DNA of 63,917 bases, counting the filler, from Pelomyxa schiedti (taxonomy: Eukaryota > Protista > Evosea): assembly GCA_020536535.1 (NCBI GenBank). It is 11 parts of 11 records of this genome, joined end to end, with 100 filler letters (N's around TTAATTAATTAA, not from the genome) between each part and the next. Parts side by side here need not be neighbours in the genome. Positions count along the whole stretch, not along the records: positions 43,516 to 50,625 come from JAHLWZ010001376.1; 10 more parts are not named here. The stretch is one strand, 5' to 3'. Position 1 is the stretch's first letter; each line of letters begins with the position of its first letter. Shown piece after piece: positions 801 to 50,625 of the stretch. The position numbers were made by a program, and so were the translations under genes. The notes under the pieces were generated by a model that searched no databases, was not told the DNA's origin, and was given only the letters and a program-made list of their open reading frames with translations.

Positions 801-917
801 TTCATTTTCCCAAGGTTGTCATCTCCGGTACATCGAAATGGAGAAGAGCTAGGAAAACAAGTCACTGTTCCTTGAGGGAGGTGTTTTGTAACTTCCATCT
901 AAAAAAATTTCCCCTTA

Positions 918-3276
918 TTAAAACCGAACAAGGCACTGTCGATTGTACACACCAAAGAACACCATTGCATCTGCCAGCAATGGAATGCATGACTCCTTTT
1001 GGGCACAGTACTCCCGCAGCTCCTCAAGTGTGATGCCGTTGAAGTGGTGAATTGTGAACAGAGCAATGTGGGGCGAGAGTGTCACAATCGGAATCAGGTG
1101 CTGTCGAATCACACTTGTGTCAATGGCTGGGTAATGGTTCACCAACATCTGCCAGCCTGAAACGTCAAGTCCACTGATTGGACTGCACTTCATGTAAATG
1201 ATCTGTTTCACAAGTGAGGAATATAAGAAAGAAACATGGGAAGAGCCTCACGTCACTCAGAGGGATTTGAAACGATTCAATGAGCCACTGTGCACACATG
1301 TTCTTCCTATGTTCAAGGAGGTGGAACAAGAGGCAATTCTTCTTCAAATTAATGTGGGAGTACTGCAGGTCAAACTGCCGAATTATCCACTTCACCATCT
1401 TGCTGGAGTACACATAAAACTTTCTGGAAGTCAGGCGCTCTGCCAAAAATTCCTTGGAAACCACAGAGGAACTTGCAGAAAATAATAAACGCTGAAGAGG
1501 GTTGATGTCTCCTGAATTCATGTATGCAGTCACAAGTTTTGCAAACAATTGTGGGTGCCTGTGAGGTTCAAATTCTGTGAAGCTTCCCAACAAGATATCA
1601 ACATGGTAACGATGATGGTGACTGAGAGCTGCTGAAATTGCATCCTGAACATACGTAGCACTCACAAGAGGGCACTTGAGGTGCTGAATGAACCACTGCA
1701 ATTCATTACTTCGGCTCTCTGGGTCATCACATATCTCAACGAGTGTGGTTCCGGCGATCACTGGATCGGAATTGGCTGCGTCCATGATGAAAAATCTTTC
1801 ATCCAACCATTCTGCAACCTCGAGGTTGCCACATCGGAGTGCACACTGCAGAGACTTCACCACGTCAGGCTGTGTGAGAGACACCTTCGTTGACAGCCAT
1901 TTCGCCAGTGTTGCACCACATCGCTGTGTGGAGCACGAAGCCACGAATGTGGCTGGTGTTAGAATGAAGTGCTTCTCTGCGCAAAGCCACTCAGTAAATT
2001 CAACCTCTCCAAACTTTTGGCAGAGGCAATTCAAAATTTCGTTGCTTGGGGTGATTGGAGATGCCATAATTACTGACTTGGCGACCTCTATTTTCTCTAT
2101 GTGCTTGAAGGTACTTTCATTGACAATCCCTCCCCCCTCGGTGTTGCTTTCAAGGCCCTGGAAATCTTCCACGGAGCTGTGCGTGTTGCCAAGTAGTGCT
2201 CTTTGAAACTTGGGTGTGTGTGCACAACTCTTGACCACAGGAAATTTCTCAAAACACCACTTGATGTTGCTTGGACATTGACCACTTGCACAGTCTTCCA
2301 CAAGCTTCGTGAGTACGGATGGGTGGAGCTTCACCAAGTCAAACTTGTCAAACAACCAACTGATAACCCCCATATCTCCACTCCCCATTGCACTCTGCAG
2401 TGGGTTTGGGTAAAGAATCCAAGGAGCCTCATCCTTCCCGATTCTGAGGAAAGACACGAGCCACTTGACGAGCTCCAGGTTGCCACTCTCACAACCACTT
2501 TCCAATGCACCTCTACTTATACGGTATGAGCCACACGAAGCCTTCACATATTCTCTCACCTTGTCCCTCAAAGTGGTCCTGATCACCACACTACCCCTTG
2601 CTAAGAGGCATTCATTTCCCAGACAATACACATCACTCCACCCCTCCATGCACCGGCCATCCCACAATGCCGGCAACGTGCCCACGTTTGTTGTCCCACC
2701 ATCTCCAAGAAACATTCTTGCCTCCTCCAAGTGGCGCCCTTTGACAAGCCCAGTCACCGCAGCACTCACCTCCTTGATGGCAACCTGCTCCCGGTGCTTC
2801 GCGTCATCACCATCATCACCACTCACTGTGATGAGCATAGTGCTGCTGCTTGATATGGCCGAACGGGGCGGGCACCATTGTGGGCCCGTGTTAATTCGCC
2901 TGTGCTTGACAATCCACGCGACGCACGAGGGGCACAGTAGCCTCGCAGCATCTGAAATGAGGGAGTACGAACTGGCTCCGAGCAGGAGCAACAGCCTACG
3001 GCAGACGAGGCCAACGAGCGGGAACAATGCTTCGGCCAGCCGCAGCAGCGCGTAGGTGCACCAATCCAGCCACCCGGGCTGCACGACGATGTCCCACACC
3101 ACTCGGGAAACGCGAAGCGTGGGCAGCGCCCTGTCGATGCAGCCACTTGTGGGAGTCGCTTCGGCGATGATGGAACATTGGCGTTTCTGTGTTTGTGTTG
3201 CTGTGGGGATGGTGACACAGAGGGGCATCACCTGCGGGGGCAGTACTGCGACCGATGACGTGTTACCACCCATCAC
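918..3276 (-). CDS. Lineage-specific degenerate ankyrin-repeat-like protein, about 769 aa, 2 exons (3276-1252, 1202-918)
   Basis: Long ORF with recurring CxxG(N/D)L(E/G)V(V/A)(K/E)WL-type helical repeats. A 49-nt GTGAGG...AACAG phase-0 intron (1251-1203) joins it in frame to the 918..1211 ORF. Close paralogue of 3485-5861. Confidence 0.85.
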
Positions 3277-3484
3277 TGTTGGTTTTTTTTTTTATTATTA
3301 TTTGAAGAGGCCCTCAAACGCGGCTCTCGTGTGGCTCCTTCTCGGTGCCAATCCTTCTGGATCTGTGATCACGAAGAGGGAAGGAAGATTCTCGTTTCGA
3401 ACGGAAAACTGAGCTTCTGGGTGGTTTTATAAGAACCACCATCGGAAACGAACGAGTTCCGCCCCAAACATCAAAAGAAAGATC

Positions 3485-5861
3485 ATGGGGGTCAACGCCT
3501 CGTCACCAACAACAGATGTGCCCCCGCAGGCTCGCTCCTCCACTGCACCTGCGTCGTCAACACAACTCACAGAACCTCAACAACGCAGCGGTCCGTCAAC
3601 GGCCACACACACCCCACAGCACCACAGTATCCTCACTCCAACAACCAGTCCTGCTGCTGCTGGTGCTGTTGCTAGTGCCGGCGTGAGGGCTCTGCCGACG
3701 CTCCGCGTCTCGCGGATGGTCTGGGAACTCGTCGTCGTGGCGCCGACGGCCGGGGCGGGCCTGGGTGTCCAGTCGCTGTTCAGGCTGGCCGAGGCGATGT
3801 TCCCGCTGCTGGCCCTCGTGTGCCGCAGGGTCATGGCGCACTCGGGCGACGGCTCGTACCGCCTCATCGCGGTGGCGGCGGGGTCGCGGTGCCCCGCGTG
3901 CGTGGCGTGGATTGTAAGGCACAGGCACTGCAACGCAAACGGAATGGCAAGTGATGGCCACCGCACCATCAGGCACCGGGAGCAGGTTGCCATCAAGGAG
4001 GTGAGTGCTGTGCTGACTGGGCTTGTGTGGAGAAACTCCTTGGAGGAGGCACGAATGTTGCTTGGCGACGGTGGGACAACGAACGTGGGCACGTTGCCGG
4101 CATTGTGGGATGGCCGGTGTGTGGAGGGGTGGAGTGATGTGTATTGTGTGGAGGCTGAATGCAGAACAAGGGGGAATGATGTGGTGATCAGGACCACGTT
4201 GAGGGACAAGGTGAGAGAATACGTGAGGGCCTCGTGTGGGTGCCTGTGGAAAAATGCGTTGGAAAGTGGTTGTGGGAGTGGCAACCTGGAGCTCGTCAAG
4301 TGGCTCGTGTCTTTCCTCAGAATCGGGAAGGATGAGGCTCCTTGGATTCTTTACGAAGACCCACTGCAGAGTGCAATGTGGAGGGGACATCTGGGTGTTG
4401 TAAGCTGGTTGTTTGACAAGTTCGACTTGGTGAACCTCCATCCATCAGTGCTCGCTGATTTTGTGAAAGCTTGTGCAGGGAGTGACTGTCCCAGCAACAT
4501 CAAGTGGTGTTTTGAGAAATTTCCCGTGTGCAAGAGTTGTGTGCAGACATTTACCTTTCAAATTGCCCTCTTGGGCAACACGGACAGCTCTGTGGAAGAT
4601 TGCCAGTGCCTTGAAAGTCACATTCGTGAATGGGGAGTTGCCGATGAATTCGCCTTCAAATGCATCGAAAAAATGGATGTTGCCAAGTGGGTGCTGGCTA
4701 CACAACCAGTCTGTCCAAGCAACACAATTTTGGACTTCCTGTGCCAAAAGTTCGGAGATATGGAATTTGTTGAGTGGCTTTGCACAGAGAAGCACTTCAT
4801 TCCAACACCAGCCACATTCGTGGCAGCGTGTTCCACCGAGAGAGGTGGTGCCACACTGGCGAAATGGATGTCAACGAGGGTGTCTCTCACACAGTCTTAC
4901 GTGGTGAAGTCTCTGCAGTGTGCACTCCGCAATGGCAACATCCAAGTTGCGGAATGGTTGGATGAATCCTTTTTCATCATGGATGCAGCCAATTCCGATC
5001 CAGTGATCGCCGGGACCACACTCGTTGAGATTTGCAATGATAAACACTTTGGGATGGATGTTGTGGGATTGCAGTGGTTCATTCAGCACCTTCGACACCC
5101 CCTTGGAATGAAGTATGTTCACGAGGCACTTTCAACGGCACTTGGCAACTCTTGCTCTCGACATGTTAAGCTCTTGTTGGAGAGATTCTCTGAGTTTGAA
5201 CCTCACAGGCACCCACCACTGTTTTCAGGACTCCTGATCCTGTTTATGGAACTTGGTGATGTATATACTCTTCGGCATCTGTTTTCCGTTGGTTCATCAT
5301 TGCTTACAAAGGAATTTGTGGCAGAGTGCCTGACTTCTAACAAGTTTTATGTGTCCTCCAGCAAGATGGTGAAGTGGATAATTCGGCAGTTTGACCTGCA
5401 GTACTCCCACGTCAGTTCAAACAAGAATTGCCTCTTGTTCCACCTCCTTAAAAAAAGGAAGAACATGTGTGCACAGTGGCTCATTGAATCGTTTCAAATC
5501 CCTCTGAGTGACGTGTGCCATCACCTCCCACCAGTTTATCTCATTCTCGTTTTCCTCACACTTCATTCAGGTCATTGAGATGACGGCCAAGTGGTGCTAT
5601 CCAATCAGTGGACTTGACGTTTCAGGCTGGCAGATGTTGGTGAACCAGTACCCAGACATTAACACGAGTGTGATTCGACGGCACCTGATTCCGATTGTGA
5701 CACTCTCGCCCCACATTGCTCTGTTCACAATTCACCACTTCAACCGAATCACACTCGATGAGCTGCGGGAGTACTGTGCCCAAAAGGCGTCAAGCTTTGA
5801 ATTGCAGTCAGAGGTGAGGGTGTTCTTTGGTGTGTACAATCGACCTAAATGGTCTGAATGA
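3485..5861 (+). CDS. Lineage-specific degenerate ankyrin-repeat-like protein, about 772 aa, 2 exons (3485-5512, 5571-5861)
   Basis: Paralogue of the upstream gene in head-to-head orientation. A 58-nt GT-AG intron (5513-5570) sits at the same position, after IPLSD. Confidence 0.85.
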
Positions 5862-5955
5862 ACGGACTCAGTTGAAAGAGTCCTTCAAAAAAGACTCTTT
5901 CGTTGTTGGTCTTGTCGCGTTTCTCCTTTCTGAGAAAACCAAAAAAACCAAAAAG

Positions 5956-6539
5956 ATGTCGTTTCCCACCAACGGCTGCGACGACGTCGAGGGCGCCGCC
6001 GCGGCCACCACCACGGCGCCTCCGTCCTCCTCATCACCCAGCGTCGACCAACTTGGTGCTTTGGTGGAACTGGGGAACCCGGTGGGGCAGCGCCTGAGGC
6101 TCCTGGACCAACTTGGGGGCGCGGCGGGGGTGGCGTCGGCGGTTGGAAGCGACGCGAGCCGCGGCCTTCCGAGAAGGCGGACGCCCGCGGCCGACGCAGC
6201 GGCCCTCGCCAAGTTGCTATTTGTTTGGTTTTTGTGTTTGTTTGGTCGTATAAATGCTTTATTATTTGTTTCATAGTTCTTCACCCTCTTGTCTGTTTTG
6301 TCTGTCTGTGTTTTGTTTCTTGTGTTTGTTTGTTACTGGGTTTTTTTTAACAAAACAAAACTTTTAAACTCGTTAACAGCAAAGAAGGTACGGCAGGAAC
6401 GTGGTTCCTGAGCAGGATCCGCGATCTTTAGTACTGATGATTTGGGAAGGACTGCACGACAGGATCTTAGTTATCCTGATGATATCAGGTTTTCAAATAT
6501 TTCAACATTTAATTTCTGAGTCACTCTCTGGCAAGCAAC
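5956..6539 (+). CDS. P-type IIB (PMCA-like) Ca2+-ATPase, 5' fragment truncated by a gap
   Basis: LDQLGGAAGVASAVGSDASRGL, then after an intron RRYGRNVVPEQDPRSLVLMIWEGLHDRILVILMIS. This matches the cation-ATPase N-terminal signature (GGxxxLxxxL..GL...RxxxYGxNxxP....xxxWEALxDxxLxIL). Confidence 0.75.
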
Positions 6540-6639
6540 NNNNNNNNNNNNNNNNNNNNNNNNNNNNNNNNNNNNNNNNNNNNNNNNNNNNNNNNNNNNN
6601 NNNNNNNNNNNNNNNNNNNNNNNNNNNNNNNNNNNNNNN
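6540..6639. other. Plain 100-N scaffold gap (also 16983-17082, 18205-18304, 25448-25547)
   Basis: These gaps lack the TTAA core, and each is associated with an exact 121-bp duplicated contig end. Confidence 0.95.
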
Positions 6640-6691
6640 CATCACCTCCCACCAGTTTATCTCATTCTCGTTTTCCTCACACTTCATTCAG

Positions 6692-6985
6692 GTCATTGAG
6701 ATGACGGCCAAGTGGTGCTATCCAATCAGTGGACTTGACGTTTCAGGCTGGCAGATGTTGATGAACAATTACCCAGCCATTGACACAAGTGTGATTCGAC
6801 AGCACCTGATTCCGATTGTGACACTCTCACCCCACATTGCTCTGTTCACAATTCACCACTTCAACCGAATCACACTCGAGGAGCTGCGGGAGTACTGTGC
6901 CCAAAAGGCGTCATGCATTCCATTGCTGGCAGATGCAATGGTGTTCTTTGGTGTGTACAATCGACGTGGCCTTAGTCGGTTGTAA
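6692..6985 (+). CDS. Last exon of a third ankyrin-like paralogue or allele
   Basis: 6640-6760 is identical to 5519-5639 (121 bp). The sequence then diverges, and its C-terminus (SCIPLLADAMVFFGVYNR) resembles the 918-3276 copy. Confidence 0.7.
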   Translation, partial: VIEMTAKWCYPISGLDVSGWQMLMNNYPAIDTSVIRQHLIPIVTLSPHIALFTIHHFNRITLEELREYCAQKASCIPLLADAMVFFGVYNRRGLSRL

Positions 6986-7160
6986 TAAGTCAATGAAGAG
7001 CTAGGAACAGTGACTTGCTCTTTTCAATGTCGATGTACCGGAGATGACAACCTTGGGAAAATGATGCACCCGTGCCCTCATCGCACCCCCAAGACAACTG
7101 AAGCGACGAAAATGACATTTGTGAACCAAACTCAAAAGAAAAGCAAAACCAACCCGGTTG

Positions 7161-9829
7161 ATGGCAACGTCGTCGTCGGAGTGTTTCAACCAGGGCAGCG
7201 GAGCTATAACGGCGTTAGCGTCTGTGTGCCCGTGCTGCTCCAAGCCATACAATGACCCCAGGTTCTGCTTGCTTTGCTTCAGTAATTCCCTCCCTCTCGT
7301 TATTAACCAACGTTCGTTGGGATTCTCCACCCACACAGGTTGTTGCCGTGCCTTCACGGCGTTAACATGTCCTGCATCAAAGTGGTGCCCATCACCACCA
7401 CCACCACACGCCCCGTCACCACCACCGCAGGCGCAGCGTGTGACATCGGTGTCTCTGCTGCTGCGCCGCCGAGTGATTGGGCGGCAGTGTGCCCTGTGTG
7501 TGCTTCGCGGTTTACAATGAGCTCCCTGGGCGTCGCTGCTGAGGTGCCATTGACGGCGGCCTCAGGGAGCGAGGGATTGCGCACTACGGCACTTCCGAGT
7601 GAAGGAGACTGGGTAAAGATGTTGGCCAGCGTGCTCAAAACAGACCCGCTTGCTGTTGTTTCCGAAAACAAGGACCCTGCTGTAAATTGTGGTACGTTGG
7701 TTAAGTCTCTCCTTTTTTTTTTTTTTTTTTATTTATTAACGGCTACAAGATAAGAAAGGGTGCACTCTCCCAGCAGTGATATTTTGTCCACAGTGTGACA
7801 AATATTTATGTAAAACTTGCTCTGACTTCCTCCACGAGTCTTTCTTCCTTGATCATACACCAACTGTATACTTCCCCACTCTTTCTTTTTTTTAAAAAAA
7901 AAATCACAATGCATCTCAGAAAAAACCCACTGCTACTGCCAAGAAGTCATTTAAATGTGTTCATGACAACAGAAAAGCAAAGTTGTACTGCACCTGTTGC
8001 GACACCTTCATTTGTTCATCTTGTCAAATAAATTGGCACAAGGCACGTACTCCAAACACTGTGCCTAGTACTACTGGCAGTCAGAGTGGCACTGCCACAA
8101 CTAATACTACCACAACTTCGAGCGCGCCACACGAAGAACCAACAGAAACTCCCACTGAAAAAGTAAATTCTTTCAAATCTGGAGTAACTTTTTAACTTGA
8201 GACATTTCAGAAAAAAGTCACACCAGAGGCCCAAACAAATAAAACACGCCAATACCTCCCAAACGAGGTACTCAGTGCCCGTTTCCCATTTCAAGGACCA
8301 CCAGAGGGAGAATCAAGCCAACAACAACACACCACACCAACACTGATTCCAGCATTGGGGTGTGTTGTGCTCCCACAACCTGGAAGCAGATTCTGTGAAC
8401 ACCATGGAATCCCTCTCACAATACTCTGCTGGGGCCCAAACCCACCAACTTCAAAGACCTTGCCCCCTCCCACACCACACGCCTCCAACAGTTCCCAGAA
8501 ATCAGCAGCAACTAAGATAGACCATCATCCAAAGATCATCTGCACTGAATGCCTTTTCTCAGGTGAACACGTTGGGCACACCAACCACGAGAACCTGGCA
8601 GTTGCTGAAAAGAGGTTGCGGGGATCCCTGGAGGGAGTGATTGAAATCCTCACCCAGCGGTGTGCCAATGCCTTGAATATGAAATGCAATGCAGAGGCCC
8701 AGCTCTCGGCGTTGCAACGCCAATTAAATGACTGTGACAATGGCATGGAGATTGAAGTTCAACAGCTTGTGAAATCCATCCTTGAGGTACTCAAGGGTTG
8801 CCAAATAAAGCTCAGGAAATTGGTCACAACAAAGGTTGGAAACATACGTTATCTAATAAGTAAAACCAGTAGTGAAACCTCACTATCTAATAAGTGAAAC
8901 CTTCTCACCTTCCTCACGGCACAGAGTCAAAGTTTGGAAAACGTTGTCACACAATCCAGGAATCAGTTTTACGTTCTCTCCAACAACATTGTGCTGGGCA
9001 AACGATTGTGCTCACTGGAAGGAATTAAAGTCGGTGAAACTACATCATCTTCCTTTGGACCATCCTCTGTGAAACGCCCTCCAATACTTGACAACAATAC
9101 AAGCAGCTTTGCTTTCGTGAATGTGTTCTTGCAACTTCAGCCAACCTTGCAGAAAGCCTTCGTGGAGTCATCAACCCAAGCCACCAGTGAACACAATGAT
9201 GCAAATGTGGCCCCAGAAATCAAGGAAGTGATGGACACTATTCATGAAATAACAAGAGAGAAACCTGGTGAAGTAAAGGATCTCCGAGCAAAGTGTGCCC
9301 ACCTGCAGAAAGCTGTTGCTAGATTAGGCACCTTGGCTGTTGGTGAGCTGCTGTTTGACACGCCAGGGGATGAGCACAAAGTGGTTGATGAGCGTCTAGT
9401 TTTTGACACCCCAGGAGAGCACAAAGTGGTTGTGCCGCCAGGAGTGAGTGCGCTGTCATTTGTGGTGGTTGGGGCTGGTGGCGGCGCCGGCTGCCACGAC
9501 CCAGTCGAGGGTGGTGGAGCAGGGGGCGGCGGCGGCGGCTGTGCTTTGGTGCTCGGGCTCGTGGTTGCTGAGGGTGACGCCTTCGTTGTTGTTGGCAGGG
9601 GTGGTGCTGGTGGGCCAAGCATGGGCGAGCAGGGCAAGAGGGGCGGCGACACCACAGTGACACTGTCGGGGATGACACTCGCTTGCGGTGGCGGCGGTGA
9701 TGGCGGGAAAACACACAAAACAGGTGGGAACTACGGCCAACTGGGGGGGCTTGGTGGAGTTGGGTCAGTTGCACTGCCAGGCACGTGCAGCGCCGCAAGG
9801 ACAGGGGCACACAAAGGGGGCAGGGGCGG
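7161..9829 (+). CDS. RBCC/TRIM-like protein: RING, 2-3 B-boxes, coiled coil, C-terminal glycine-rich domain (3' truncated at linker)
   Basis: RING CPCC...DPR|LLPCLH...CI...CPVC across an intron at about 7262-7338. B-box-like CPQCDKYLCKTCSDFLH, YCTCCDTFICSSC...H and CEHH...CTEC..SGEH.GH. Heptad region 8600-8850. C-terminal FDTPGEHKVVVPPGVSALSFVVVGAGGGAG...VVVGRGGAGG. Confidence 0.8.
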
Positions 9830-41961: not shown

Positions 41962-43766
41962 TCTTTTGTGGGACTTATTCTCGAGCCCACAGAAGCTAAC
42001 ATTTTCAAAAAGTGGGAATGGAAAGATCATGATCGGTTCATCAAAACTTGGCATAAGCTGTTCTTGGGAGAGCATGCGTTTGCCCAATAACAAGTCATGG
42101 TGAGATGAATTACTGACTTGGAAATTCACCATCTTCAGGAATCAAATTTGATTTTTTTTGATTGTTTTCTCTACATATGCAAGGGAGAAAACAATCAAAA
42201 TGTGGGCAACCACCAAAACTGTGCCTTGTCAACAACAACAACAACAACACACAGTGGAGTGACAGCTGTTACCCAGACCCCAAACACACACCTGTTGTCA
42301 CTTGACAGGTGACTTGGCAGTGACCAGGCACCTTGAGTTTTCGAAAAAAACAGGACTGGGTGGTGTCGACACGTCCTCCCTCTAGCAGGCAGAAGACCTC
42401 CTCCCAGAAATTCACCACTGGGTGCTGCCAGTGATGTCACTGAACTTCGACTGCAGAAATGACTGTCTGGCACCAAATCAACGCCATCCTTCAAGAAACA
42501 CCCATTGTGGCACTGTTGCCAACGTTGGTGTCTTGCCACTCAGCCTGGTGGTATGACATTGGCTGTTCTTGTTGTTGTGCAACAGCATAATAAACAACAC
42601 ATCGGGTCTTTTTTTTTTTTCCCTTCAGCTGTCTCTTTTTCTCATCGTCAGGGTTTGAACCTGTTTACCTTGAAAGCGTGCATAAACCACGGCCCCACAC
42701 ACACAACTGGCGTTTGTTTGCACCAGAGTTGTGAACAACAACAGCAACCTGACAGGCACAACACATCTGGCCCAGATCTGCTCAGGTTTCTAGCTTTTTG
42801 CTCTGCTTGTGAAAACAAGGTGAAAACTACTGTGTGGAACTGCTAGAAATTTCAACCAAGCTACCAGCAAAGCTAACTTAAGTCTAAAACCTTTTCTAAA
42901 GGTGATTTCTATCCAATACCTACGCGTTTTGCCACACAGCAAAGGTAATCACTTGACTGATAATCCATTTGAACATCACAGCCTTTCCCCCAATTGCATT
43001 TTACACACTCCCTTTACAACAACAAGAACAAACAAGAGAACTCCTTATTCTCTTCACTCTCTCATTTTCTTCCTCTGTGGTACTTATTCTCAAGCCGACA
43101 TAATCTAACAATGGGCTTGGTTTCAAATGAAATCAAATAAATAATAGACCATACTTTCTGTAAATAACCTTAAAGGTTGTTAACCACATTGTAAAGAATG
43201 TAGTAAGAAGGGGAAACCACCCAAAAGTGGTTCACCATGCTCACACACTTTTGGGTGGGCAAAAAAAATAACATACAAGATCAGACTCTATCATAACATA
43301 CAGTAATAAGATAACAGTTCCTGCAATTACTGTGGAGGGTACTGCTCTGGGGTGAGCAAATGATGCCACTGCCCAGCAATGGAAATAGGATGGGACACCA
43401 TCTGTGCAACACTGCNNNNNNNNNNNNNNNNNNNNNNNNNNNNNNNNNNNNNNNNNNNNTTAATTAATTAANNNNNNNNNNNNNNNNNNNNNNNNNNNNN
43501 NNNNNNNNNNNNNNNGCAAGCACTGGTTTCTCCTTATAGTGTGCATCATTTTCCTTTCCCACCGTATTCCATCCTCTAAACATTCAAGACATATTCGCCA
43601 CTGTGTTGGAAATTGCCGGATTTGACATTCCTACTACCTAGTACCCAATTCGTGCCTGTCTGCTGGTATCCCTCAACACCTTTGCCTGTGTGAGGTTCCA
43701 TTTTATTAGCACTAACCAATCTGGTGCCTCTGTGATAACTCGTGAAATTTCAAAAAAATAAAGTTT

Positions 43767-46700
43767 TCACAACAAGGAAGAGAAACTGTGGAATTGGAGC
43801 GTGACAGTTACGTACTTGGATAGCCTGGGAGGCGGGGCGGCAGGGGGGGGGTCAGTAGAAACGAGTACGAAGTTGCAACCTATCGTGTAGTTGGTTTGGT
43901 GATTGCTTTTGGGTGTTTACCTGGTGGTGTGAGGAGCTCCGCTTCTGTCAAAACAAACCAAGAAAAGCCGGTGATGTCATACGCAAGGGGTGAACGAACT
44001 TCCAACAGCAATCCCTTCTGTCCTTGCATTGCAGTAAACGCCACCGCCACCGCCCTGTTCCTTGAAATGCTTGAGAATCCATACCAGCATATATTGGTTG
44101 AGCGGTTTGGTGACAAGTTGGTCTCCCACGACTCCGGCAGTGTTCCAAACCCGCGGTAGGCTACAACGTCAGTCACAGGCTTGAGCTTCGCGAGTGCCGT
44201 GAGGAGCAGCTTTGTGTATGGCTTCCATGGAGCCAATGATGCATTCGTTCTGTGTGGATCCCTCAGTGCCCAGTTCAGTGCTGCAAATACTTTTGGCTTA
44301 TTTTTCGTGTAAAGAACAATGGCTGCAGCTTCTTCCGTTGTCATTGGCTCCCCAACAAAGGAACCATTTCCAGATGCCCTAGTGACAAGGCCCTCATCTA
44401 TGACCTTGGTCCTGCAAAGAGCCACAGCTTCTGCGAGGCACTCTGCTGTGCACCCAACTTCAGAGTGCAAACCGAACAATGCAGCGTCGAGGGAAACTGT
44501 GGGCACACCCTGCAGAAGGTTCACAAGTGGCGGAATAGCGATGGCATCACTAAGACCGACATCAATCATGATGGCGTCGAGCGGTGGGGCCTGAAGCTGC
44601 TCACTTATCTCTGGACTGCAAACGATAAAAATGGAGCCATCACAGTGGTCCTTCACAATGTCAAAAGATGGGTCTGTATCAATACGACTCATGCAAAGTT
44701 GTGTCAGGATGCTTTTAAGCACTGATTGTGATTCATCATATCCTTTGAACCTACCAAAAACGTTGTGAGGCAAGGAGTTATTTAGAGTAAAAAAAAACAC
44801 TTGTTGAGCTTCTTTGCGTGAACATGGACACCCCTCCACACAGCGTCAAATGTTTCCCCATAAAAATCAGAGTAAACATGGCCCTTCAACTCTGGGATTC
44901 CATAAAGAAACCCATTCGCACTCCCCAACCCAAGGAGTTTGCTTGATACAGAAACTGCCAGAGAATACGTGCTTGTGGGTTGTGTTGGATTCCACCTTTT
45001 GAGTATCATTGCAAGTTGAGCCGTTTTTGCTTTCACAAGAATATTGGCATTCTCAATGAGCTTTCTGGCAAGTTCCTTTCCCACCCTGTTGCCTTCTTTC
45101 ACGGGGTCGATGCACCTAAGGCACTCTTTGGAGTGTGACTCCTTCCAGTCGGTGTCATAGGAGCACACAGCTTCTCTGATCGTATTGGCAGCAGGGAATA
45201 CCACAAAACCAACATACAGCGCCAGGGGTATCACAATCTGCCATATTGGGAATCTTGATTCATCACACGAGATGCAGTCAACCAGGTTGTTGTTGACCAG
45301 ACGAAGGTGCCTCGATATGGGTTTGAAGAAATTGGAAACGAACTGTCTCCACATCGGCTTCAGAGTGGCCCACAGGTGTTGGTTGAACGCAAACTCGGTG
45401 CTCCTTTCCACAGTCTGAGGCCAACTGAGCAGAATGCCCTTGCTTTGGCTTGCATTGAAGACAGCCTCCTTGGCAATGGCATCGAGTTTGACCAAAGTGT
45501 CTCTCGTTGCCTGCTGCACCAAATTCGAGCATTGGTGTTTTATCTCTTCTTCCCCTCTTTTCAGTTGCTGTACGAAACATTGGCACGTGGCGATTCCGTG
45601 TTGAAGTTCTCCAAAAGAGATCATTGCGTCAGCATACATTCCGCAGGGACCGCAGATCCCCTCACAGCCTCTCAAAATAATGGTGTCCAGTGTTCTTCCA
45701 ATCAGTCCTTGCAATCTTCTTTCAAAAATTTGGGACAGATCTGCGTACTTTGGTAGGTCTTTGACTGCTTTCCCGCAACGTATTTTGAGGAAACGAAGGG
45801 CAGACAGTTCAGCCCAATAAGGGGAGGTTTCCCTCTTGGGGTAGTGTCCCAGAATATCTGGGGCAAGAGCTTGCAGTTGAGAATAAAATGCATTAAGCAC
45901 TTCATCAGGAGTTTCTTGGTGTTCCTCCACTTCTTCTTCAAAAAGGAGGTCCGCCTTATTCCCAACGAAAAGAATGGGCACTGACTTGTGAATCCCAGTC
46001 TTGAGCAGAGTCTTGATGGCGTCAACGTCCTCCCGTTTTACGGCCCCAGAGTGGACATCAAGAATGTAAATTGCACCAGCAACGCCTTTCAAGGCGTTCA
46101 TAACCACCGCATCCAACTCCTTGCTCTCACCAAGGCCCGGAAGGTCAATGAAATCAAATCCTGAAACTGGAAGCTTTGTTTGACCAGCATCTTCTTTGCC
46201 AATGGCATTCGTTTCTACAGGAGGGGGGAGGTGCACTTCCACAATTGATGAGGCACCACTTACCTTTTGGTCCTCAGTCAATACCACGGCATTATATGGC
46301 AGTTCTCTGTTGAATTGGATTGGACCCTCGGTGACTGTTCCATCAGGGTTTTTGATGGTGTATTCCATTGTGTCTCCTGCCTTGATGACGGTTACGCGAC
46401 CTGTGCACTGCAGCTTCCGCGAAGGCAGCACGATATCTCCCAATATCGCATTGCAGAGCGTGCTTTTCCCAGCCTTCATATCACCAAGAACTGGATTAGC
46501 AATTAGAGGTTCCAGAATCTTTTCACTTGATTTTACATACTGGCAATAGCAGTGGATGGCCAAGGATACTCAGCAGGTTCACTCTTTTTTGTGTGAGTAT
46601 AGTTGGGGGAAAAAAAGAGGTACATTGCACAGAACACGTGTATCAGAGTGTATTTTTGTCAGCTCGGCTTTGGTCTGTGCAAAGTTTTTGATTGTTTTTT

Positions 46701-48130
46701 CTAGGGACACCTTCTTCTCTGGTGCTTCGTCATTGTATGGCATCACTGCCTGCCTTCTTTCCGCTCCTAAATCTGTTGCTGTTGTCACTCTTGGATCGAA
46801 GACTTCCTTTTTTAGTTCCTTGAACCTCTTGAGCCACTCTGAGGTCTCTTGCTCAGACGTTGATTGGAAGTCCCAGATGCCTTTTAAGAATGAGTACAGA
46901 CGAAATCAAATAACGTGACACTGGCAGACCATTTTTTGTTGTGATGTAAAACCCATTGAGTTTGTATGTGGTGAACTCCGCAGCCAATCCAACAGAGATC
47001 ATTTCCTCCACGGGTATTTCTCCCTGAAATATGTGTCACCACATTCTTTCTTTGCTTGATTTTTTTTTTTTTTTTTTTTAAGAAGGGGAAATGGATACGA
47101 GACGCCAAAGGAGTGCAACATCACTCAACGTTGTAAACAAAGGCATTCGGCCAGTTGCTGCTATGTACCCTGAAGTATTGTGAGCATTACATAGTGGAAA
47201 CAATAAAAAAAACCTGAGAAAAAGAATGTTCTGTTGCAGGCAGTATTGCTTGTTGCTGAAGCGGCAATGCCAATTTCTTCTGAAACATCTCTCTCCGTTT
47301 CATTAGAACTCTGAATAGGACCTCCCATCTCGGCTTCCGCATTGGAAGTGGTAGGGGTGCCTTGTTCAAACACTCCCAAAAAAGAAGTTTTATCAGGTAT
47401 AACCACTTGTCGCATCTTCATTCTCTTTCAGGCAATGGAATAACAGAAAAAAAGGTTCCAACCACTCCTTTCCACAAGAAGCCTCTCTCTGGGTGGTAAA
47501 TGGCGAACTGAAGCAGATATGTGTCACGATACAACATGTGTTTGCCAGAAAAACAGTTTCCACCCCTGCAAGAAAATAAGTAGTGCATAAAGTACAAGTT
47601 AAACTTCACGTGTGTCTCGATAGTGGGTATAGCCTCCACAGTGGTTTCCCATCCGGTCTGAGGAAAGCCGCCTGCCTCAAAGTCATTTGGCTAGTAGTCC
47701 TGCGAACAACCAAGGCCAATACGATTTCACCCGGAGCAAGTGTGAATGTTGTGGCGTCGAACTCGAATGTAACTGCCTTCGCCATCGGAGCTCAACTTAG
47801 GGGTTACCTAATTTTTCGTCTCTTGTGTTTGTTATCACCTCTTACCTGTCGAAAACCAACTTTGAAAACAAATTAAATTGGTTTTTCCCAGTTTGTGTCT
47901 GGCCATAATTAGTTGGCCAACTTGTCTCACCATGATTCCCTGAATCCTTCGCCCACTCCACAGCGCGTCTATCCTCTTCAACCTGTCATTTTGAACGCTC
48001 AATTCTCCGATCATTTGCACTCCGGTGTACACTTGCAATGAGAACAACCAAGTTGGTTTGTCGAGGGTTGCCTTGACTTTGTCGTGTAAAGCAGGTCAAA
48101 ATTTGGGTCTTTGGATCTTGCCATGTGATG
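43767..48130 (-). CDS. Multidomain protein: unknown N-terminal domain, PH domain, dynamin-like GTPase with helical bundle, kinase N-lobe relic, and ADP-ribosyltransferase (R-S-E, ExE type)
   Basis: PH-like IWDFQSTSEQETSEWLKRFK (~46800-46880). G1 LGDMKAGKST (~46460-46490), G2 CT, G3 FIDLPG (~46135-46152), G4 NKAD (~45950). Hydrophobic IWQIVIPLALYVGFVVF. FYGETFDAVWRGVHVHAKKL. A 50-nt GT-AG phase-2 intron (44800-44751) links it in frame to AIVLYT...ALNWALR...YRG...FSSIS...EAELLTPPG. A final intron (~43920-43880) gives a last exon ending TGA at 43767. The 5' boundary is uncertain. Confidence 0.8.
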
Positions 48131-48275
48131 CTCCTCAGACGCTGGAAAGACCACGAAACTTTAGAACGTGTCTGGTCCCGATGTGGTCCAGACATTTCAG
48201 AATTTTCACTTCACAGGGTACAGAGAACCAGGACCTTTTCTGCCCCGTTGATGCCAAAAAGTGTGAGTCCCAAAA

Positions 48276-50625
48276 TTAAGTACGCTTTTTTGTGGGAGCA
48301 GGAAGAAAACCACTAAGAAGAGTGGTGAGGGGACCTGGTTGTCCTTGTTGGAATTGAAATGACTGTATAAGGTCCTCATAAATGCCTCTGCTTGCGTTTC
48401 CTCCGGTTGATTGTGCACTGAATGACGTGGAGTTGCGAACCGCTTCCAATTCCTGAAGTGCTTCAAGGTACTCCTCGTCGTCATCACCTCCTTCCGCTTC
48501 ATCCTGACTGACACCTTCACCTCCCATTTCATCATCCTCATCATCTTCACCTTATTGATGGCAAGTTAGTGCTGGGAAAGAACGATGAACGGTGCTGTTC
48601 GACATACCTTTGAGTACTCTTTCTAGTATTTTCTTCACTCGGTCTGCATTGATATCGTCACTGCCGTTGGACCTGTGTGTAAAGACACCACAAAAAAGAG
48701 GAACAAACACGAAAAAAATCCAATTTTAACTGAAGGCACAATGTAAATAAATAAAGGAAAAGCAGAGGGGGCATACTGCTTTTGGGAGTCAGTATCTGCG
48801 CTGCGCTCATCCTCATTGTCCTCGCTATCACTCCCTCCACCGATTCCCTGAAAGTCGGACTTGGAATTCAAAAATCTGCTCAGTGAAGATTCCAGGGAAG
48901 ATGCTGGTTCGGCAGCACTCTCAGCAGTATGATCTTTCATCTGGAATTGTGCCAGATCTCGTTCAAGGTTGGAGAACATTGCAGCTGGTTCGGATTCCAA
49001 CCATTCATCACTGTTATATCATGTTGTTATTTTTGACTGGAAATTATGACTGGGTGGTTACCTGTCAGGTTGTGGTAATGAGTCTACAGGAGGAAAACTT
49101 TCAAGGCTTATATCAGGGTTTGTTGAGCAGATAGCGTCAACTTCAGAGGCAAAAGTACTGGCAATGTGCCGAGCTAGCAGCCTGGGAATGATCAAATCTG
49201 ACATGGGCTGAGAGGGGAAAATACGTGGGGCTTGTGGGTGGAGAGGTCCTGGCTGTGGATCTCCTGCTGCACTGGTACGCAAGCTCAAAACCACATGCCT
49301 TCAGGAACTGATAAGCATAAAAGACTTTAGTGGAAGTGCTTACCAGTTTACATCCAAGGATTGCTGAGGTGAATAGAATATCATCAGGAGCTGGTAACTG
49401 GCCAAAAGGCGCAGGCCGCACGATCCGCTGACCGTGTAACATTGCGTAGTGACTGTGTGTCATACCAATACGAACAACCACCTCACGTCCACTACTCTTA
49501 TTATTGTCCCCTCCAGCAGGAAGAAACCTCTCCATCAGGGTGCACACCTATTTTTCGTTGAATATAGGGAACTTGCTTTGATAACGTACTCTCCACTCCT
49601 CTGGCGTATGCTCGCACAGAGCGTGTATGGCAAGAGATATAAACTGTGGGTCACGTCGAAGTACAAGAGCACAGTGTACAGGGAGAAGGGCATTGGTACA
49701 ATGTAAACTCTGTCTGAAAGTGATTGGAGATTGAGTTTCTGGGGATTGTTGTCGATTGGGGGTGCAGAAACATTCTAGGCGTGAAGAGATTGCAGCCTGA
49801 ATGGGTGGTGAGGCTCTCGTGTCGACTGGTTGGGTGCAAAGAATTCTGAGTGCAGTACTAACAGTAAGTACTGAGGGAATGACAGGCAGGAGGGCAGGAG
49901 TGTGCGGTAAAGGAATTAGGTGAATCATGCCATTCCTTATGAATACCTGCACATTGTCTTCAATTTTTTACAGTTTATTCCGAACTAAGAAAACAGTGCA
50001 CATACTCTGTTCTCAATCAAGCCTGATGGGGCCTCTTCAACCCACTGGGGCAGAACTTCAGCCGCCTCAATCAACATAAACTCACCATCTCCATCCTGCA
50101 CACTTATGGGATATTAGCTCCAAAGAAAGAAAAAAAAACAGGAAAAAGGTTGGGAACAAGGGCAAAGGGGGGGGGAGAACCACAAGGGAGAACGGAGTTC
50201 ATACGTGGCAGCCACGACCACGTCGGGCATTTCCATAGTCAACCGCCGGACGACGTGAACAACGAACCACTCGTCGTCGGGGCACTCCCCGAACGACACG
50301 CACCCCTCCACCGTCCCCCACTCCCAGTCCCCTTCCCCTTCCCCCTCGCCCTCGCCCTCGCCCTCGCCCCGCTGTGTCTCCCTCTCCCTCTCCCTCTCCT
50401 TCCTCCCGCGGTCTCCCCCCTGGTCCCCGCCGGCCTCGCCCCCGGTGCTGGTGGGGCTCGCAGGAGGGGCAGGGCGGGGGGAGGGTGCGAGCAGGGCGAG
50501 GGTTGGCGGCTCCTTGTGCCACAGGTACCCTCCCCACAGGCTCTCCAGGTGGCTGGCGACGGCCTCCGCCCGGCTCCTCCGCTGCTGGGCTTCGGATGCA
50601 GAGGAGGAGCCGGGGCCCTGCTGTT
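48276..50625 (-). CDS. ECD: Ecdysoneless/SGT1-family protein (5' truncated at linker)
   Basis: YLWHKEPPTL, CVSFGECPDDEWFVVHVVRRLT, DGDGEFMLIEAAEVLPQW...ENRV|FIRNGMIHLIP, YAMLHGQR, and C-terminal LIQSFQFQQGQPGPLTTLL, all matching the ECD family. Confidence 0.85.

Follow-up and report, generated by a model that had tools for sequence, protein, structure and literature searches.

The stretch of DNA analysed here (the window: 63,917 nucleotides, filler included) comes from the anaerobic archamoeba Pelomyxa schiedti, and carries an expressed nuclear gene of 10 exons in which a GTPase of the BDLP/mitofusin class is joined to an R-S-ExE ADP-ribosyltransferase (ART) in one product of 1192 amino acids (Table 1). 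The gene model was assembled from the splice joints of RNA contigs (runs X1 and X4); the spliced frame is open across the 1192 codons, and remains so from the GTPase into the ART, while the product is collinear over its full length with Pelo_3836 (86% identity) and Pelo_3837 (68%). Eight of the nine introns are removed in the RNA contigs, and for the ninth (47566-47609) the choice, made from GT-AG pairs that leave the reading frame begun at the ATG uninterrupted, fell on the one whose product is collinear with these same two proteins. A preliminary description, made from the sequence alone, had proposed a fusion in one spliced gene: the fusion is confirmed, but not its extent, as the gene starts at 47785 and not near 46900 and contains eight introns more than the one then recognised, and that outline of the protein missed some 300 N-terminal residues and a module resembling the N-lobe of kinases. 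In the deposited annotation, the gene is buried in a mis-merged “ecdysoneless protein.”

Table 1. Features of the fusion gene and of its product, in positions of the window.
Feature	Position	Strand	Details
Coding sequence (complete)	47785-43767	minus	10 exons, 1192 aa; ATG 47785-47783, stop TGA 43769-43767
N-terminal beta-rich region	47395..47785	minus	aa 1-100; fold without assignment
Intron	47566..47609	minus	44 nt, GT-AG; from homology, junction shared by deposited annotation
Intron	47416..47462	minus	47 nt, GT-AG; skipped in X4 contig
Probable PH-like segment	46807..47247	minus	aa ~150-240, ...FYITTKNGIWDFQSTSEQETSEWLKRFKELKK; from Atlas clusters
Intron	47170..47213	minus	44 nt, GT-AG; skipped in X4 contig
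Intron	47024..47098	minus	75 nt, GT-AG; 22-base homopolymer run inside; X4 record continuous 47022 to 47098
Intron	46881..46929	minus	49 nt, GT-AG; skipped in X4 contig
Intron	46584..46623	minus	40 nt, GT-AG; skipped in X1 and X4
Dynamin-superfamily GTPase, BDLP/mitofusin type	45877..46574	minus	aa ~305-520; G1-G4; Pfam Dynamin_N
Intron	46491..46540	minus	50 nt, GT-AG; immediately upstream of P-loop; skipped in X1 and X4
G1	46485-46459	minus	GDMKAGKST
G2	46407-46396	minus	CT(G)R
G3	46146-46135	minus	DLPG
G4	45960-45949	minus	NKAD
Helical stalk (neck and trunk)	44902..45876	minus	aa ~521-845; long helices, pLDDT 80-96
Hydrophobic paddle/transmembrane-like segment	45252-45187	minus	aa 729-750, 22 aa, FPIWQIVIPLALYVGFVVFPAA
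Kinase-N-lobe-like module	44591..44901	minus	aa ~846-932; three strands, helix, two strands; no C-lobe after
Intron	44751..44800	minus	50 nt, GT-AG; inside N-lobe-like module; skipped in X1 and X4 contigs
Predicted R-S-ExE mono-ADP-ribosyltransferase domain	43770..44359	minus	aa ~1010-1192; helical N-terminal part from ~aa 936
Catalytic Arg	44161-44150	minus	AYRG, R1078; invariant in 52-sequence alignment A3; aligned to yRG of Vis and Tre1
S-x-S motif	44080-44063	minus	GFSSIS, S1105/S1106; Ser invariant in A3; aligned to F-S-s of solved ARTs
ExE motif	43948-43931	minus	TEAELL, E1148/E1150; each Glu at least 90% in A3; aligned to EaEvl of Vis and Tre1
Intron	43880..43920	minus	41 nt, GT-AG; directly after ExE motif; skipped in X1 and X4

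Two of the introns touch the enzymatic domains directly: the beta1/P-loop strand AIAILGDMKAGKST reads correctly only with intron 46491-46540 removed, and the last exon, beyond intron 43880-43920, encodes the final beta-strands of the ART, the C-terminus after splicing (CNFVLVS...KYVTVTLQFH) agreeing with all the homologues. On the canonical 50-nt intron at 44751-44800, which the preliminary description had already held to place the ART in frame, depends whether there is one product or two, as the unspliced message would meet a stop at 44782-44784. All the RNA contigs that cover this junction are spliced, with a shorter flank of 41 nt in the X1 contig and of 255 nt in that of X4, which passes through it without a gap over 3.5 kb (this spliced X4 contig, of 3577 nt, reaches from the last exon back to exon 2), and the splice sites are kept at the Pelo_3836 locus. 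This evidence consists of short-read contigs, not of single molecules spanning the whole gene, and one cDNA end of run X1, with a tag like a template-switch oligo, falls 39 nt before the intron, at 44839, so that a transcript of the ART alone could start there. If so, the gene would give a GTPase-only protein (intron retained, ending at 44782), an ART-only protein from ~44839, or both, and the fusion reading frame would be minor or artefactual; it is also the case that positions 44840-45033 are not bridged by any X1 contig, and that for the Pelomyxa sp. JSP gene EukProt gives several Trinity isoforms that are shorter. However, another X1 contig spans a similar tagged end within the gene, at 45900, hence such ends look like the result of fragmentation; a start at 44839 would, in addition, halve the N-lobe-like fold, the first in-frame ATG after it falling within the helix of that module, and the collinear frame is kept in four genes with identity descending to 37%. 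We therefore regard two separate products as scarcely credible. In the predicted fold, the intron lies within one folded module and is not a boundary of two separable genes.

The N-terminal part of the protein is the least defined. For residues 1-100 there was no match in Pfam or among PDB profiles, and only a weak lead in Atlas to CBM20/48 (score 0.79; AF2 pLDDT <35). For the following PH-like segment, the top named Atlas clusters are all PH domains, although the best score, 0.87, is to be taken as a lead only, Pfam gives no match, and AF2 does not resolve it; in the AF2 model, both the N-terminal 260 residues and the paddle are of low confidence. The GTPase, modelled in a paralogue with pLDDT 80-96, is on the contrary recognized by Pfam Dynamin_N (E 2.2e-13, 51 bits, over a curated cutoff of 27); by phmmer its closest solved sequence is BDLP (2J68, 2.4e-5), where LGDMKAGKST aligns with LGDMKRGKST, and Foldseek likewise ranks BDLP first (2J69, E 6e-13 across 682 columns), with IniA, MFN1/2, and Cj-DLP next. 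The bacterial-dynamin/mitofusin assignment previously suggested is thus upheld. Motifs G1-G4, almost invariant in 30 sequences, were all located, as was the paddle-like segment that the preliminary description had noticed, which is the hydropathy maximum of the protein (Kyte-Doolittle 19-aa mean 2.04), and all the homologues have a hydrophobic stretch at that position.

Between the stalk and the ART, the structural alignment (VIA-align, model residues 2-88) has, in every row from 22 to 50, the N-lobe of a protein kinase or pseudokinase (Z of 8.5 for CDK9, 8.1 for JAK2 JH2, and 8.0 for MLKL), and the pattern G..TF.A.WR.V.VH.K.L is conserved, but neither Pfam nor hhalign gave a kinase signal. 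The ART domain exceeds the Pfam cutoff (PF01129, E 3.5e-7, 30.2 bits; cutoff 22.3), and does so in the four Pelomyxa proteins; its profile matches, among PDB entries, Vis (5e-9), Tre1 (2.6e-7), ART2.2 (5e-6), and HopU1 (1e-5). Its AF2 pLDDT is 84-97, and with the confident model (pLDDT 80), the Z values by VIA were 17.9 for ART2.2, 17.6 for HopU1, 17.4 for Tre1, and 14.0 for Vis, the structurally closest ARTs also including the effector XopAI. In other words, the full R-S-E signature announced for this domain is present and the modelled domain folds as an ART, so that motifs and fold predict a mono-ADP-ribosyltransferase of the arginine type.

With BDLP of Nostoc punctiforme (2J68/2J69) the Pelomyxa protein shares Dynamin_N, a long helical neck and trunk, a hydrophobic paddle, and a P-loop block that is nearly identical (LGDMKAGKSTLCNAILG in one, LGDMKRGKSTFLNALIG in the other), whereas outside the P-loop identity is 14–15%, and BDLP has neither the ~300 extra N-terminal residues nor the N-lobe-like module nor the ART; the gene, moreover, is a eukaryotic one with nine introns, and its distribution is limited to Pelomyxa. 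With rat ecto-ART ART2.2 (1GXY), HopU1 of Pseudomonas syringae (3U0J), Tre1 of Serratia (6DRH), and Vis of Vibrio (4XZJ), all arginine-specific, the fold is shared and the R, S-x-S, and ExE elements align, at 17–21% identity; here, however, the ART is the C-terminal domain of a large GTPase predicted to be cytosolic, and is neither secreted nor injected nor held by a GPI anchor. Outside Pelomyxa, some of the best matches to the GTPase domain are invertebrate “DSTYK-like” proteins (Nematostella XP_032222785, E 4.5e-9; Saccoglossus XP_002739349, 6e-8), which follow a similar logic, a dynamin-like GTPase and stalk and then an enzyme (Dynamin_N plus PK_Tyr_Ser-Thr); past the GTPase, no similarity of sequence or profile to them was detectable, and where they carry a complete C-terminal kinase-like domain, Pelomyxa has an N-lobe-like remnant and then the ART.

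Metagenomic eukaryote-like ARTs (28–39% identity) form one subfamily with that of Pelomyxa, with the common pattern DEAAAI.LYT...LN.ALR...KLLLTAL...RG...FSS...E.E..L.PG, and are also joined to an oligomerising NTPase or a sensor module: NACHT (L020), LRR (LRR_6; L015, L041, L027, L010, and L037), or AIG1 GTPase (L053). Unlike in Pelomyxa, the ART is N-terminal in them, and in place of a dynamin-like protein it has a STAND NTPase, an LRR, or a GIMAP-type GTPase as partner. As for Mx, GBP, and IRG proteins, they too belong to the dynamin superfamily, and their nucleotide-driven assembly on membranes or pathogens offers a plausible functional analogy; to our knowledge, they have no enzymatic effector domain. 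By Foldseek, MxA and MxB appear at ranks 30-47, far below BDLP, IniA, and mitofusin, and there is no GBP among the top 50. The GTPase falls, then, outside the Mx and GBP families, and of the likeness to them initially drawn the analogy of function stands, while membership of the family does not.

In a search of 1.84 billion representative proteins, the matches beyond the GTPase domain were Pelomyxa sequences only, and as far as these searches reach, the architecture is found only in this genus. Pelo_3836 and Pelo_3837 have it in collinear form, as does a transcript of Pelomyxa sp. JSP that was assembled independently, and G1-G4 together with R, S, and ExE of the catalytic site are kept in all three, including the JSP homologue at 37% identity. 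In full-text searches of the literature no description of such an architecture was found, as the preliminary description had supposed, and the terms “dynamin” and “ADP-ribos” are absent from both papers on P. schiedti. PADLOC and NCBIfam gave weak generic matches only. The dN/dS against Pelo_3836 is 0.35 overall, 0.28 in the GTPase, and 0.25 in the ART, which shows constraint and no strong positive selection. Finally, of two contigs that are 88–91% identical, one carries an inverted tandem duplicate at the locus and the other lacks it.

What could such a protein do? Proteins of the BDLP/mitofusin class are machines of fusion and fission, and R-S-E ARTs commonly modify themselves, some acting on actin or Rho. 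One could thus suppose a housekeeping role, in which the dynamin-like part would fuse or divide an endomembrane or organelle, and the ART would tune it in cis or the machinery nearby (the protein itself, actin, or small GTPases), rather than attack. The best structural matches and the purifying selection on all domains agree with this; however, core membrane machinery is usually single-copy and widespread, whereas this family is confined to one genus and its copy number differs between contigs, and the partners of the ART relatives are of the conflict type, making such a role, in our opinion, unlikely. R-S-E ARTs without an acceptor show NADase activity, and NACHT and LRR modules typically trigger effectors of death or dormancy; in view of the relatives joined to such modules, assembly might activate the domain mainly as an NAD+ glycohydrolase, with local or cell-wide depletion in the manner of an abortive infection. 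Against this, the full ExE and the ARTT-loop region are conserved, which is typical of protein-arginine transferases, the closest solved relatives all modify proteins, and in a giant multinucleate cell the loss of NAD+ throughout would be an improbable strategy; we consider it very unlikely.

We are somewhat inclined to a third reading, by analogy with the systems described: a GTP-driven assembly on membranes that would deliver ART activity, most probably in conflict with intracellular microbes or in their control. Support for an effector role is indirect, and comes from (i) the NACHT, LRR, and AIG1-GTPase modules fused to the nearest ART relatives; (ii) the duplicate that varies between contigs; and (iii) the host itself, since Pelomyxa houses bacteria and archaea in vacuoles and cytosol (PMC10579272). 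A specific case would be that of cell-autonomous immunity or symbiont control, where the protein, like GBPs, would coat the microbes or the vacuoles containing them and ADP-ribosylate a target in the microbe or the vacuole. Tre1, an ART that acts on FtsZ, illustrates the sort of target through which microbial growth or division could be limited, and it is this interbacterial toxin, with the effectors HopU1 and XopAI, that is found among the structurally closest ARTs; the immune-type, NLR-like company of the relatives, the restriction to one lineage, the variable duplicate, and a cell packed with prokaryotes point the same way. However, immune effectors are often under strong positive selection and here there is no sign of an arms race, the GTPase is not of GBP, Mx, or IRG type, and the domain neighbors of such distant relatives are a weak guide to function, making this specific case possible but doubtful.

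The favored mechanism, that of GTP-driven delivery, would have the following steps. GTP binding and dimerisation of the G domains would open the stalk, as in BDLP and mitofusins, and this opening would lead to self-assembly on a membrane into which the paddle is inserted, the PH-like segment perhaps aiding recruitment. Once assembled, the protein would have its C-terminal ART concentrated or set free, with the N-lobe-like module coupling stalk to enzyme, and the ART, using NAD+, would then ADP-ribosylate protein arginines at that membrane. The most probable setting for this in the life of Pelomyxa would be the conflict with, or the control of, the microbes within the cell.

The GTPase and the ADP-ribosyltransferase (ART) belong to a single spliced gene, located on the minus strand within a piece of 7110 bp (43516-50625), a contig from the nuclear genome of Pelomyxa schiedti, an anaerobic amoeba of the Archamoebae. 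In the raw, unspliced sequence they appear in two frames: a 593-aa ORF (44782-46563) matching Pfam Dynamin_N (E 2.2e-13, 51 bits against a cutoff of 27), and a 319-aa ORF (43880-44839) matching Pfam ART, PF01129 (E 3.5e-7, 30.2 bits against a cutoff of 22.3). Public P. schiedti sequencing runs were aligned on 43516-47500 and the spliced contigs compared with the genomic: run X2 gave an unspliced genomic contig of the locus, and every stretch that the contigs of runs X1 (RNA) and X4 skip has GT-AG ends when read on the minus strand. The X4 contig, of 3577 nt, runs without a break from 43757 past 47463 and lacks eight introns, and the joined exons give a single open frame. Comparison with the paralogues shows, as far as alignment can, that the true start would be ATG 47785 (MAKAVTFEFDATTF...) and that a ninth predicted intron is needed for the gene model. 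The final model has 10 exons, 1192 aa and a stop TGA at 43769-43767, so that of the extent proposed in the preliminary description (43767-46900) the 3′ end stands and the 5′ end falls some 900 bp short.

Coordinates of the introns of the GTPase-ART gene, of its neighbour and of metagenomic ART fusions (L-numbers are contigs; LRR_6, NACHT and AIG1 are the partner domains)
Feature	Position	Length	Strand	Basis or remark
Intron	43880-43920	41 nt	minus	skipped in X1 and X4
Intron of the preliminary description	44751-44800	50 nt	minus	skipped in X1 and X4
Intron	46491-46540	50 nt	minus	skipped in X1 and X4
Intron	46584-46623	40 nt	minus	skipped in X1 and X4
Intron	46881-46929	49 nt	minus	skipped in X4 only
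Intron	47024-47098	75 nt	minus	skipped in X4 only
Intron	47170-47213	44 nt	minus	skipped in X4 only
Intron	47416-47462	47 nt	minus	skipped in X4 only
Ninth intron (predicted)	47566-47609	44 nt	minus	GT-AG; homology with paralogues; same junction in deposited annotation
SGT1/ecdysoneless homologue	48276-50625+		minus	upstream of the GTPase-ART gene; Pfam SGT1 1.5e-17
ART + NACHT	L020:2803-4569			longest ORF around ART relative
ART + LRR_6	L015:2752-4296			metagenomic
ART + LRR_6	L041:772-2295			metagenomic
ART + LRR_6	L027:46-1542			metagenomic
ART + LRR_6	L010:620-2089			metagenomic
ART + LRR_6	L037:2776-4221			metagenomic
ART + AIG1/GIMAP-type GTPase	L053:97-1644			metagenomic

When the intron at 46491-46540 is removed, the '...ANPVLGDMKAGKST' of the raw ORF becomes the beta1 strand plus P-loop 'AIAILGDMKAGKST', and the removal of that at 43880-43920 gains the last two ART strands (CNFVLVS..., KYVTVTLQF), common to all homologues. 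The 50-nt intron that had been proposed to bring the ART into frame is borne out by the transcripts, since every RNA contig covering 44751-44800 is spliced and the frame runs on across the junction. Two X1 contigs break off within the gene, one at 44839 and one at 45900, where CCCATGTACTCTGCG(TTGATACC) follows; we take this to be the reverse complement of the Smart-seq template-switch oligo, and these positions therefore mark cDNA 5′ ends. Another X1 contig spans the end at 45900, and thus such ends look like RNA fragmentation; that at 44839 is bridged by the X4 contig only, so that the two ends reflect either fragmentation or a minor internal start. If the latter, a minor ART-only transcript could exist, and the GTPase and the ART could be made as separate products; however, such a transcript would begin mid-fold and the 44751-44800 junction is always found spliced, for which reasons we give this reading hardly any credence. 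The intron itself interrupts a folded module, after the third strand and before the helix, and does not separate two units. The evidence, then, is that GTPase and ART form one gene, as the preliminary description held, the full-length transcript being a putative one, reconstructed from short-read contigs. In the last coding exon, the homopolymer at 43843-43851 has 10 G in the X2 genomic contig as against 9 in the window; the longer version would shift the frame ahead of the final ART strand. The window's reading is shared by the spliced X4 contig and by all homologues, and the extra G of X2 is therefore probably an error of amplification or assembly, or else a rare variant.

Three further genes encode the same collinear protein: Pelo_3836 (1173 aa, 86% identical) and Pelo_3837 (1163 aa, 68%), both of P. 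schiedti, and a gene of Pelomyxa sp. JSP known from a Trinity transcript that was assembled independently (925/946 aa, 37%). In the Pelo_3836 locus the splice sites of seven of the nine introns align as conserved, and between Pelo_3836 and the window copy dN/dS is 0.35 overall, 0.28 for the GTPase and 0.25 for the ART, and therefore both halves are under constraint. P. schiedti has three members of the family, namely Pelo_3836, Pelo_3837 as the inverted tandem duplicate of the former, and the window copy. At the DNA level the piece shares 88% identity with part of JAHLWZ010000291.1 (GCA_020536535.1), the contig that carries Pelo_3836 and Pelo_3837, and the neighbouring SGT1/ecdysoneless gene is 91% identical. 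The window contig is without the segment of about 4.5 kb that carries Pelo_3837 (window 47789-48270 against 4804-9338 of that contig, with 88-91% identity on both sides), which is why the GTPase-ART gene lies directly downstream of SGT1. Contigs of run X3 are 90-95% identical to the window, and hence the locus occurs within one sample in two divergent versions; these may be divergent haplotypes, nuclei or strains. The SGT1/ecdysoneless homologue continues past the edge of the piece, and its 5′ part (about 50300-50625) is very GC-rich and encodes low-complexity sequence rich in Gly, Glu, Arg and Pro.

The public annotation presents this locus in another form. The window sequence is contained in an NCBI entry of 1725 aa, 'ecdysoneless protein [Pelomyxa schiedti]', a deposited model in which the SGT1/ecdysoneless gene and the GTPase-ART gene have been merged by splicing around the SGT1 stop (48276-48278) and taking an intergenic ORF (about 47900-48065) as an exon. 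This model skips ATG 47785, omits 14 residues from the hydrophobic paddle (YVGFVVFPAANTIR) and has another sequence in place of the conserved last beta-strand. We reject it, firstly, because the stop at 48276-48278 is conserved with a separate 489-aa gene of the main assembly, and also because the bridging exon has no homology support and the start, the paddle residues and the last strand are lost. The deposited model of Pelo_3836 (780-4800 of JAHLWZ010000291.1) omits some 13-16 residues (…ASSIVEVHLPPPV…) between G2 and G3; it probably contains a spurious intron, since the RNA-supported model of the window has these residues and the DNA aligns throughout the region.

In the GTPase half, the dynamin-type motifs GDMKAGKST (G1), CTGR (G2, noted earlier as CT), DLPG (G3) and NKAD (G4) lie on the minus strand where they had been described, in a domain that exceeds the Dynamin_N cutoff, and an alignment of 30 sequences shows almost no variation at the residues G, K, S, D, P, G and N. 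The closest solved sequence is the bacterial dynamin-like protein (BDLP) of Nostoc (2J68, E 2.4e-5), whose P-loop and switch-1 block is nearly identical. The structure was explored on the paralogue Pelo_3837 (68% identical), modelled at full length with AlphaFold2 from the 30-sequence alignment: pLDDT is 80-96 at residues 260-680 and 740-900, which comprise the G domain and a long helical stalk, with poor confidence at residues 1-260 and in the paddle. Foldseek with this model ranks BDLP 2J69 first (E 6e-13, 682 aligned columns), followed by IniA, mitofusin 1/2 and the Campylobacter DLP pair, with Mx, Drp1, OPA1 and dynamin far lower. From this ranking the GTPase half is, as modelled, a dynamin-like protein of the BDLP/mitofusin class, with a predicted helical neck and trunk of that class. 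The 22-aa hydrophobic segment FPIWQIVIPLALYVGFVVFPAA, which the preliminary description had also noticed, has the highest mean hydropathy of the protein (2.04) and sits in all four homologues where BDLP has its paddle and mitofusin its membrane anchor, in a low-confidence part of the model. Among immune dynamins, Mx appears only at Foldseek ranks 30-47, GBP is absent from the best 50, and neither a Pfam GBP family nor IIGP is among the Pfam matches listed for the family, so the GTPase does not group with Mx/GBP/IRG. With the PADLOC and NCBIfam models of the prokaryotic defence dynamins LeoA/LeoBC and DynA only weak, generic and partial matches were obtained (LeoBC, E about 1e-3; LeoA, 9.5e-5 in the JSP homologue; DynA, 21 bits against a cutoff of 1600). 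Given its class, the protein could be a housekeeping membrane remodeller with a regulatory ART, a reading that we regard as improbable.

At the C-terminus, the R-S-E triad is found as R1078 (AYRG), S1105/S1106 (FSS, within GFSSIS) and E1148/E1150 (EAE, within TEAELL), the motifs that had been read from the sequence, and Pfam ART is above its cutoff at the C-termini of all four Pelomyxa proteins. A phmmer search of PDB with the ART exon alone gave no significant match, for which reason a five-sequence family profile was needed; with it, solved R-S-E enzymes were reached with their motifs in register, namely the Vis toxin (5e-9), Tre1 (2.6e-7), XopAI (6e-7), rat ART2.2 (5e-6) and HopU1 (1e-5), the R, S and ExE being aligned to the same motifs of Vis and Tre1. 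In an alignment of 52 sequences, built with 45 of the 258 relatives (28-39% identity) that a metagenome scan provided, the catalytic Arg and Ser do not vary, and each Glu of ExE reaches at least 90% conservation. The structure was modelled on residues 820-1173 of Pelo_3836, a region 91-93% identical to the window (ART 93%), with a mean pLDDT of 80 and of 84-97 in the ART core. In the structural search VIA this model matches ART2.2 (Z 17.9; 209 aa, 3.1 A), HopU1 (Z 17.6) and Tre1 (Z 17.4; all 185 residues), and also XopAI, Vis, ExoS and SpvB; with Foldseek the E-values of XopAI, C3 and Tre1 are about 2e-7. The suspicion that this domain might not fold as an ART is thus not upheld, and in the model the C-terminal domain has the ART fold. 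The acceptor would be arginine, to which the ExE (as against QxE) and the arginine-specific nearest solved relatives point. An NADase triggered by assembly is a further reading of this half, and one that we hold to be very improbable. The vertebrate ecto-ARTs share their Pfam family with the Pelomyxa ART, but this is not an ecto-ART, because it is the C-terminal domain of a 1192-aa protein behind a cytosolic-type GTPase; the ectoenzymes ART1-5 have an N-terminal signal peptide, are secreted or GPI-anchored and consist of a stand-alone domain of about 30 kDa.

Stalk and ART are separated by residues ~846-932, which form three strands followed by a helix and two more strands. In the exhaustive VIA search, rows 22-50 are all protein kinases or pseudokinases aligned to the N-lobe only, with Z from 7 to 8.5 over about 80 residues at 2.3-3.7 A (CDK9 8.5, JAK2 JH2 8.1, MLKL 8.0, CTR1 7.9). 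The motif G-(E/D)-T-F-x-A-x-W-R-x-V-x-V-H-x-K-x-L is conserved down to the homologue with 37% identity, and includes a conserved Lys at the beta3 position and one Gly kept from the Gly-rich loop. This is not a bilobal kinase: the N-lobe-like unit is of about 85 aa, with neither a C-lobe nor a Gly-rich loop, and the helical region of the ART follows directly. Sequence homology of this linker to kinases was considered and rejected, since Pfam was empty at E up to 10, hhalign gave a probability of 0.1, and a BLASTP comparison with the kinase region of Nematostella gave nothing better than E 0.2; fold similarity alone stands. We call it an orphan kinase-N-lobe-like module; the Z values of the modelled structure come close to what a mere resemblance of folds could give. 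The N-terminal ~300 aa have no Pfam match, nothing below E 0.1 with a PDB profile, and an AlphaFold2 pLDDT below 35. Within them, the segment of aa ~150-240 ends in a Trp-containing helix (SEQETSEWLKRFKELKK), and its top named Atlas clusters are all PH domains (best 0.87, below the reliable range), which makes a PH-like segment a lead; the first 100 residues look beta-rich, with a weak Atlas lead to CBM20/48 (0.79).

The combination is confined to Pelomyxa among the sequences searched. A HMMER search with the 562-aa exon of GTPase and stalk, run through all 1.84 billion representative proteins, gave two proteins below 1e-30, both from Pelomyxa, and one 389-aa metagenomic fragment at 1.7e-14; the remaining matches, with E above 1e-9, cover the G domain only, the best being invertebrate 'DSTYK-like' proteins with Dynamin_N and a kinase (Nematostella, Saccoglossus) and cyanobacterial dynamins. 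In those of Nematostella (P0004) and Saccoglossus (P0006, P0131), named 'dual serine/threonine and tyrosine protein kinase', Dynamin_N (E 4e-22) lies ahead of the kinase, and no paper was found that links DSTYK with a dynamin-like domain. A word-indexed protein search with the 593-aa ORF gave no match within a range of lengths that did not admit the full-length relatives. For the ART, a scan of GTDB bacterial and archaeal genomes gave 37 pattern matches, none of which was confirmed. In the metagenomic fusions (table) the ART is N-terminal and its partner an oligomerising sensor or NTPase; their contigs have a GC content of 27-39%, some reach 204 kb, and Atlas taxa hint at Rotifera and Haptophyta. 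They look like an NLR-like repertoire with ART effectors, and these architectures suggest that the ART subfamily has been used repeatedly as an effector module. A full-text literature search gave nothing relevant on a dynamin-like GTPase combined with an ART domain. Within the proteins and papers searched, the interpretation in the preliminary description is supported in part, as to the architecture and its novelty, the function that it proposed being putative.

Beyond the composition, splicing, expression, conservation and folds of the fusion protein, which have been demonstrated, its mode of action can be proposed by analogy: (i) GTP-driven dimerisation of the G domain would open the stalk, as in the biology of BDLP and the mitofusins; (ii) the paddle, perhaps together with the PH-like segment, would anchor the oligomer on a membrane; (iii) the N-lobe-like module would couple assembly to catalysis; (iv) and finally, the C-terminal ART would transfer ADP-ribose from NAD+ to an arginine of proteins at the membrane site, as R-S-E enzymes do. 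Towards this general mechanism, a membrane-assembled dynamin-like GTPase with an arginine ART payload, we lean slightly.

Within it, a role in defence or in the control of symbionts is conceivable, though we doubt it. The cytosol and vacuoles of P. schiedti house Ca. Methanoregula, Ca. Syntrophus and Ca. Vesiculincola (PMC10579272); dynamin and ADP-ribosylation are absent from the text of that paper and from that of the genome paper (PMC8887013). A more elaborate proposal, which we think unlikely, is that of an undescribed cell-autonomous effector of Pelomyxa, a dynamin-like coat that would assemble on the membranes of symbionts or pathogens and then ADP-ribosylate microbial or vacuolar arginines, resulting in a GTP-gated control of the growth of the bacteria and archaea within the cell; in this proposal the orphan N-lobe is what would remain of an ancestral dynamin-kinase effector whose catalytic lobe was swapped for an ART.

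Proteins of the dynamin superfamily are generally regarded as mechanochemical scaffolds without an enzymatic payload, and R-S-E ARTs are best known as secreted toxins, injected effectors and ecto-enzymes. We rate the fusion as a dynamin-like protein with an enzymatic payload, with parallels in the dynamin-kinase proteins and in the fusions of ART with NACHT, LRR and AIG1. The gene had been hidden in a 1725-aa 'ecdysoneless protein', an annotation that is corrected here, and the kinase-N-lobe-like module between stalk and ART is newly revealed. That a GTPase-ART fusion is conserved and expressed suggests that membrane-templated assembly of a GTPase can place, or switch on, a protein-modifying enzyme, a design principle that would be the same in the invertebrate dynamin-like GTPases with a kinase and in the metagenomic ART fusions; and because obligate intracellular bacteria and archaea share its host cell, the protein is a concrete candidate for studies of how a protist polices or manages its endosymbionts.
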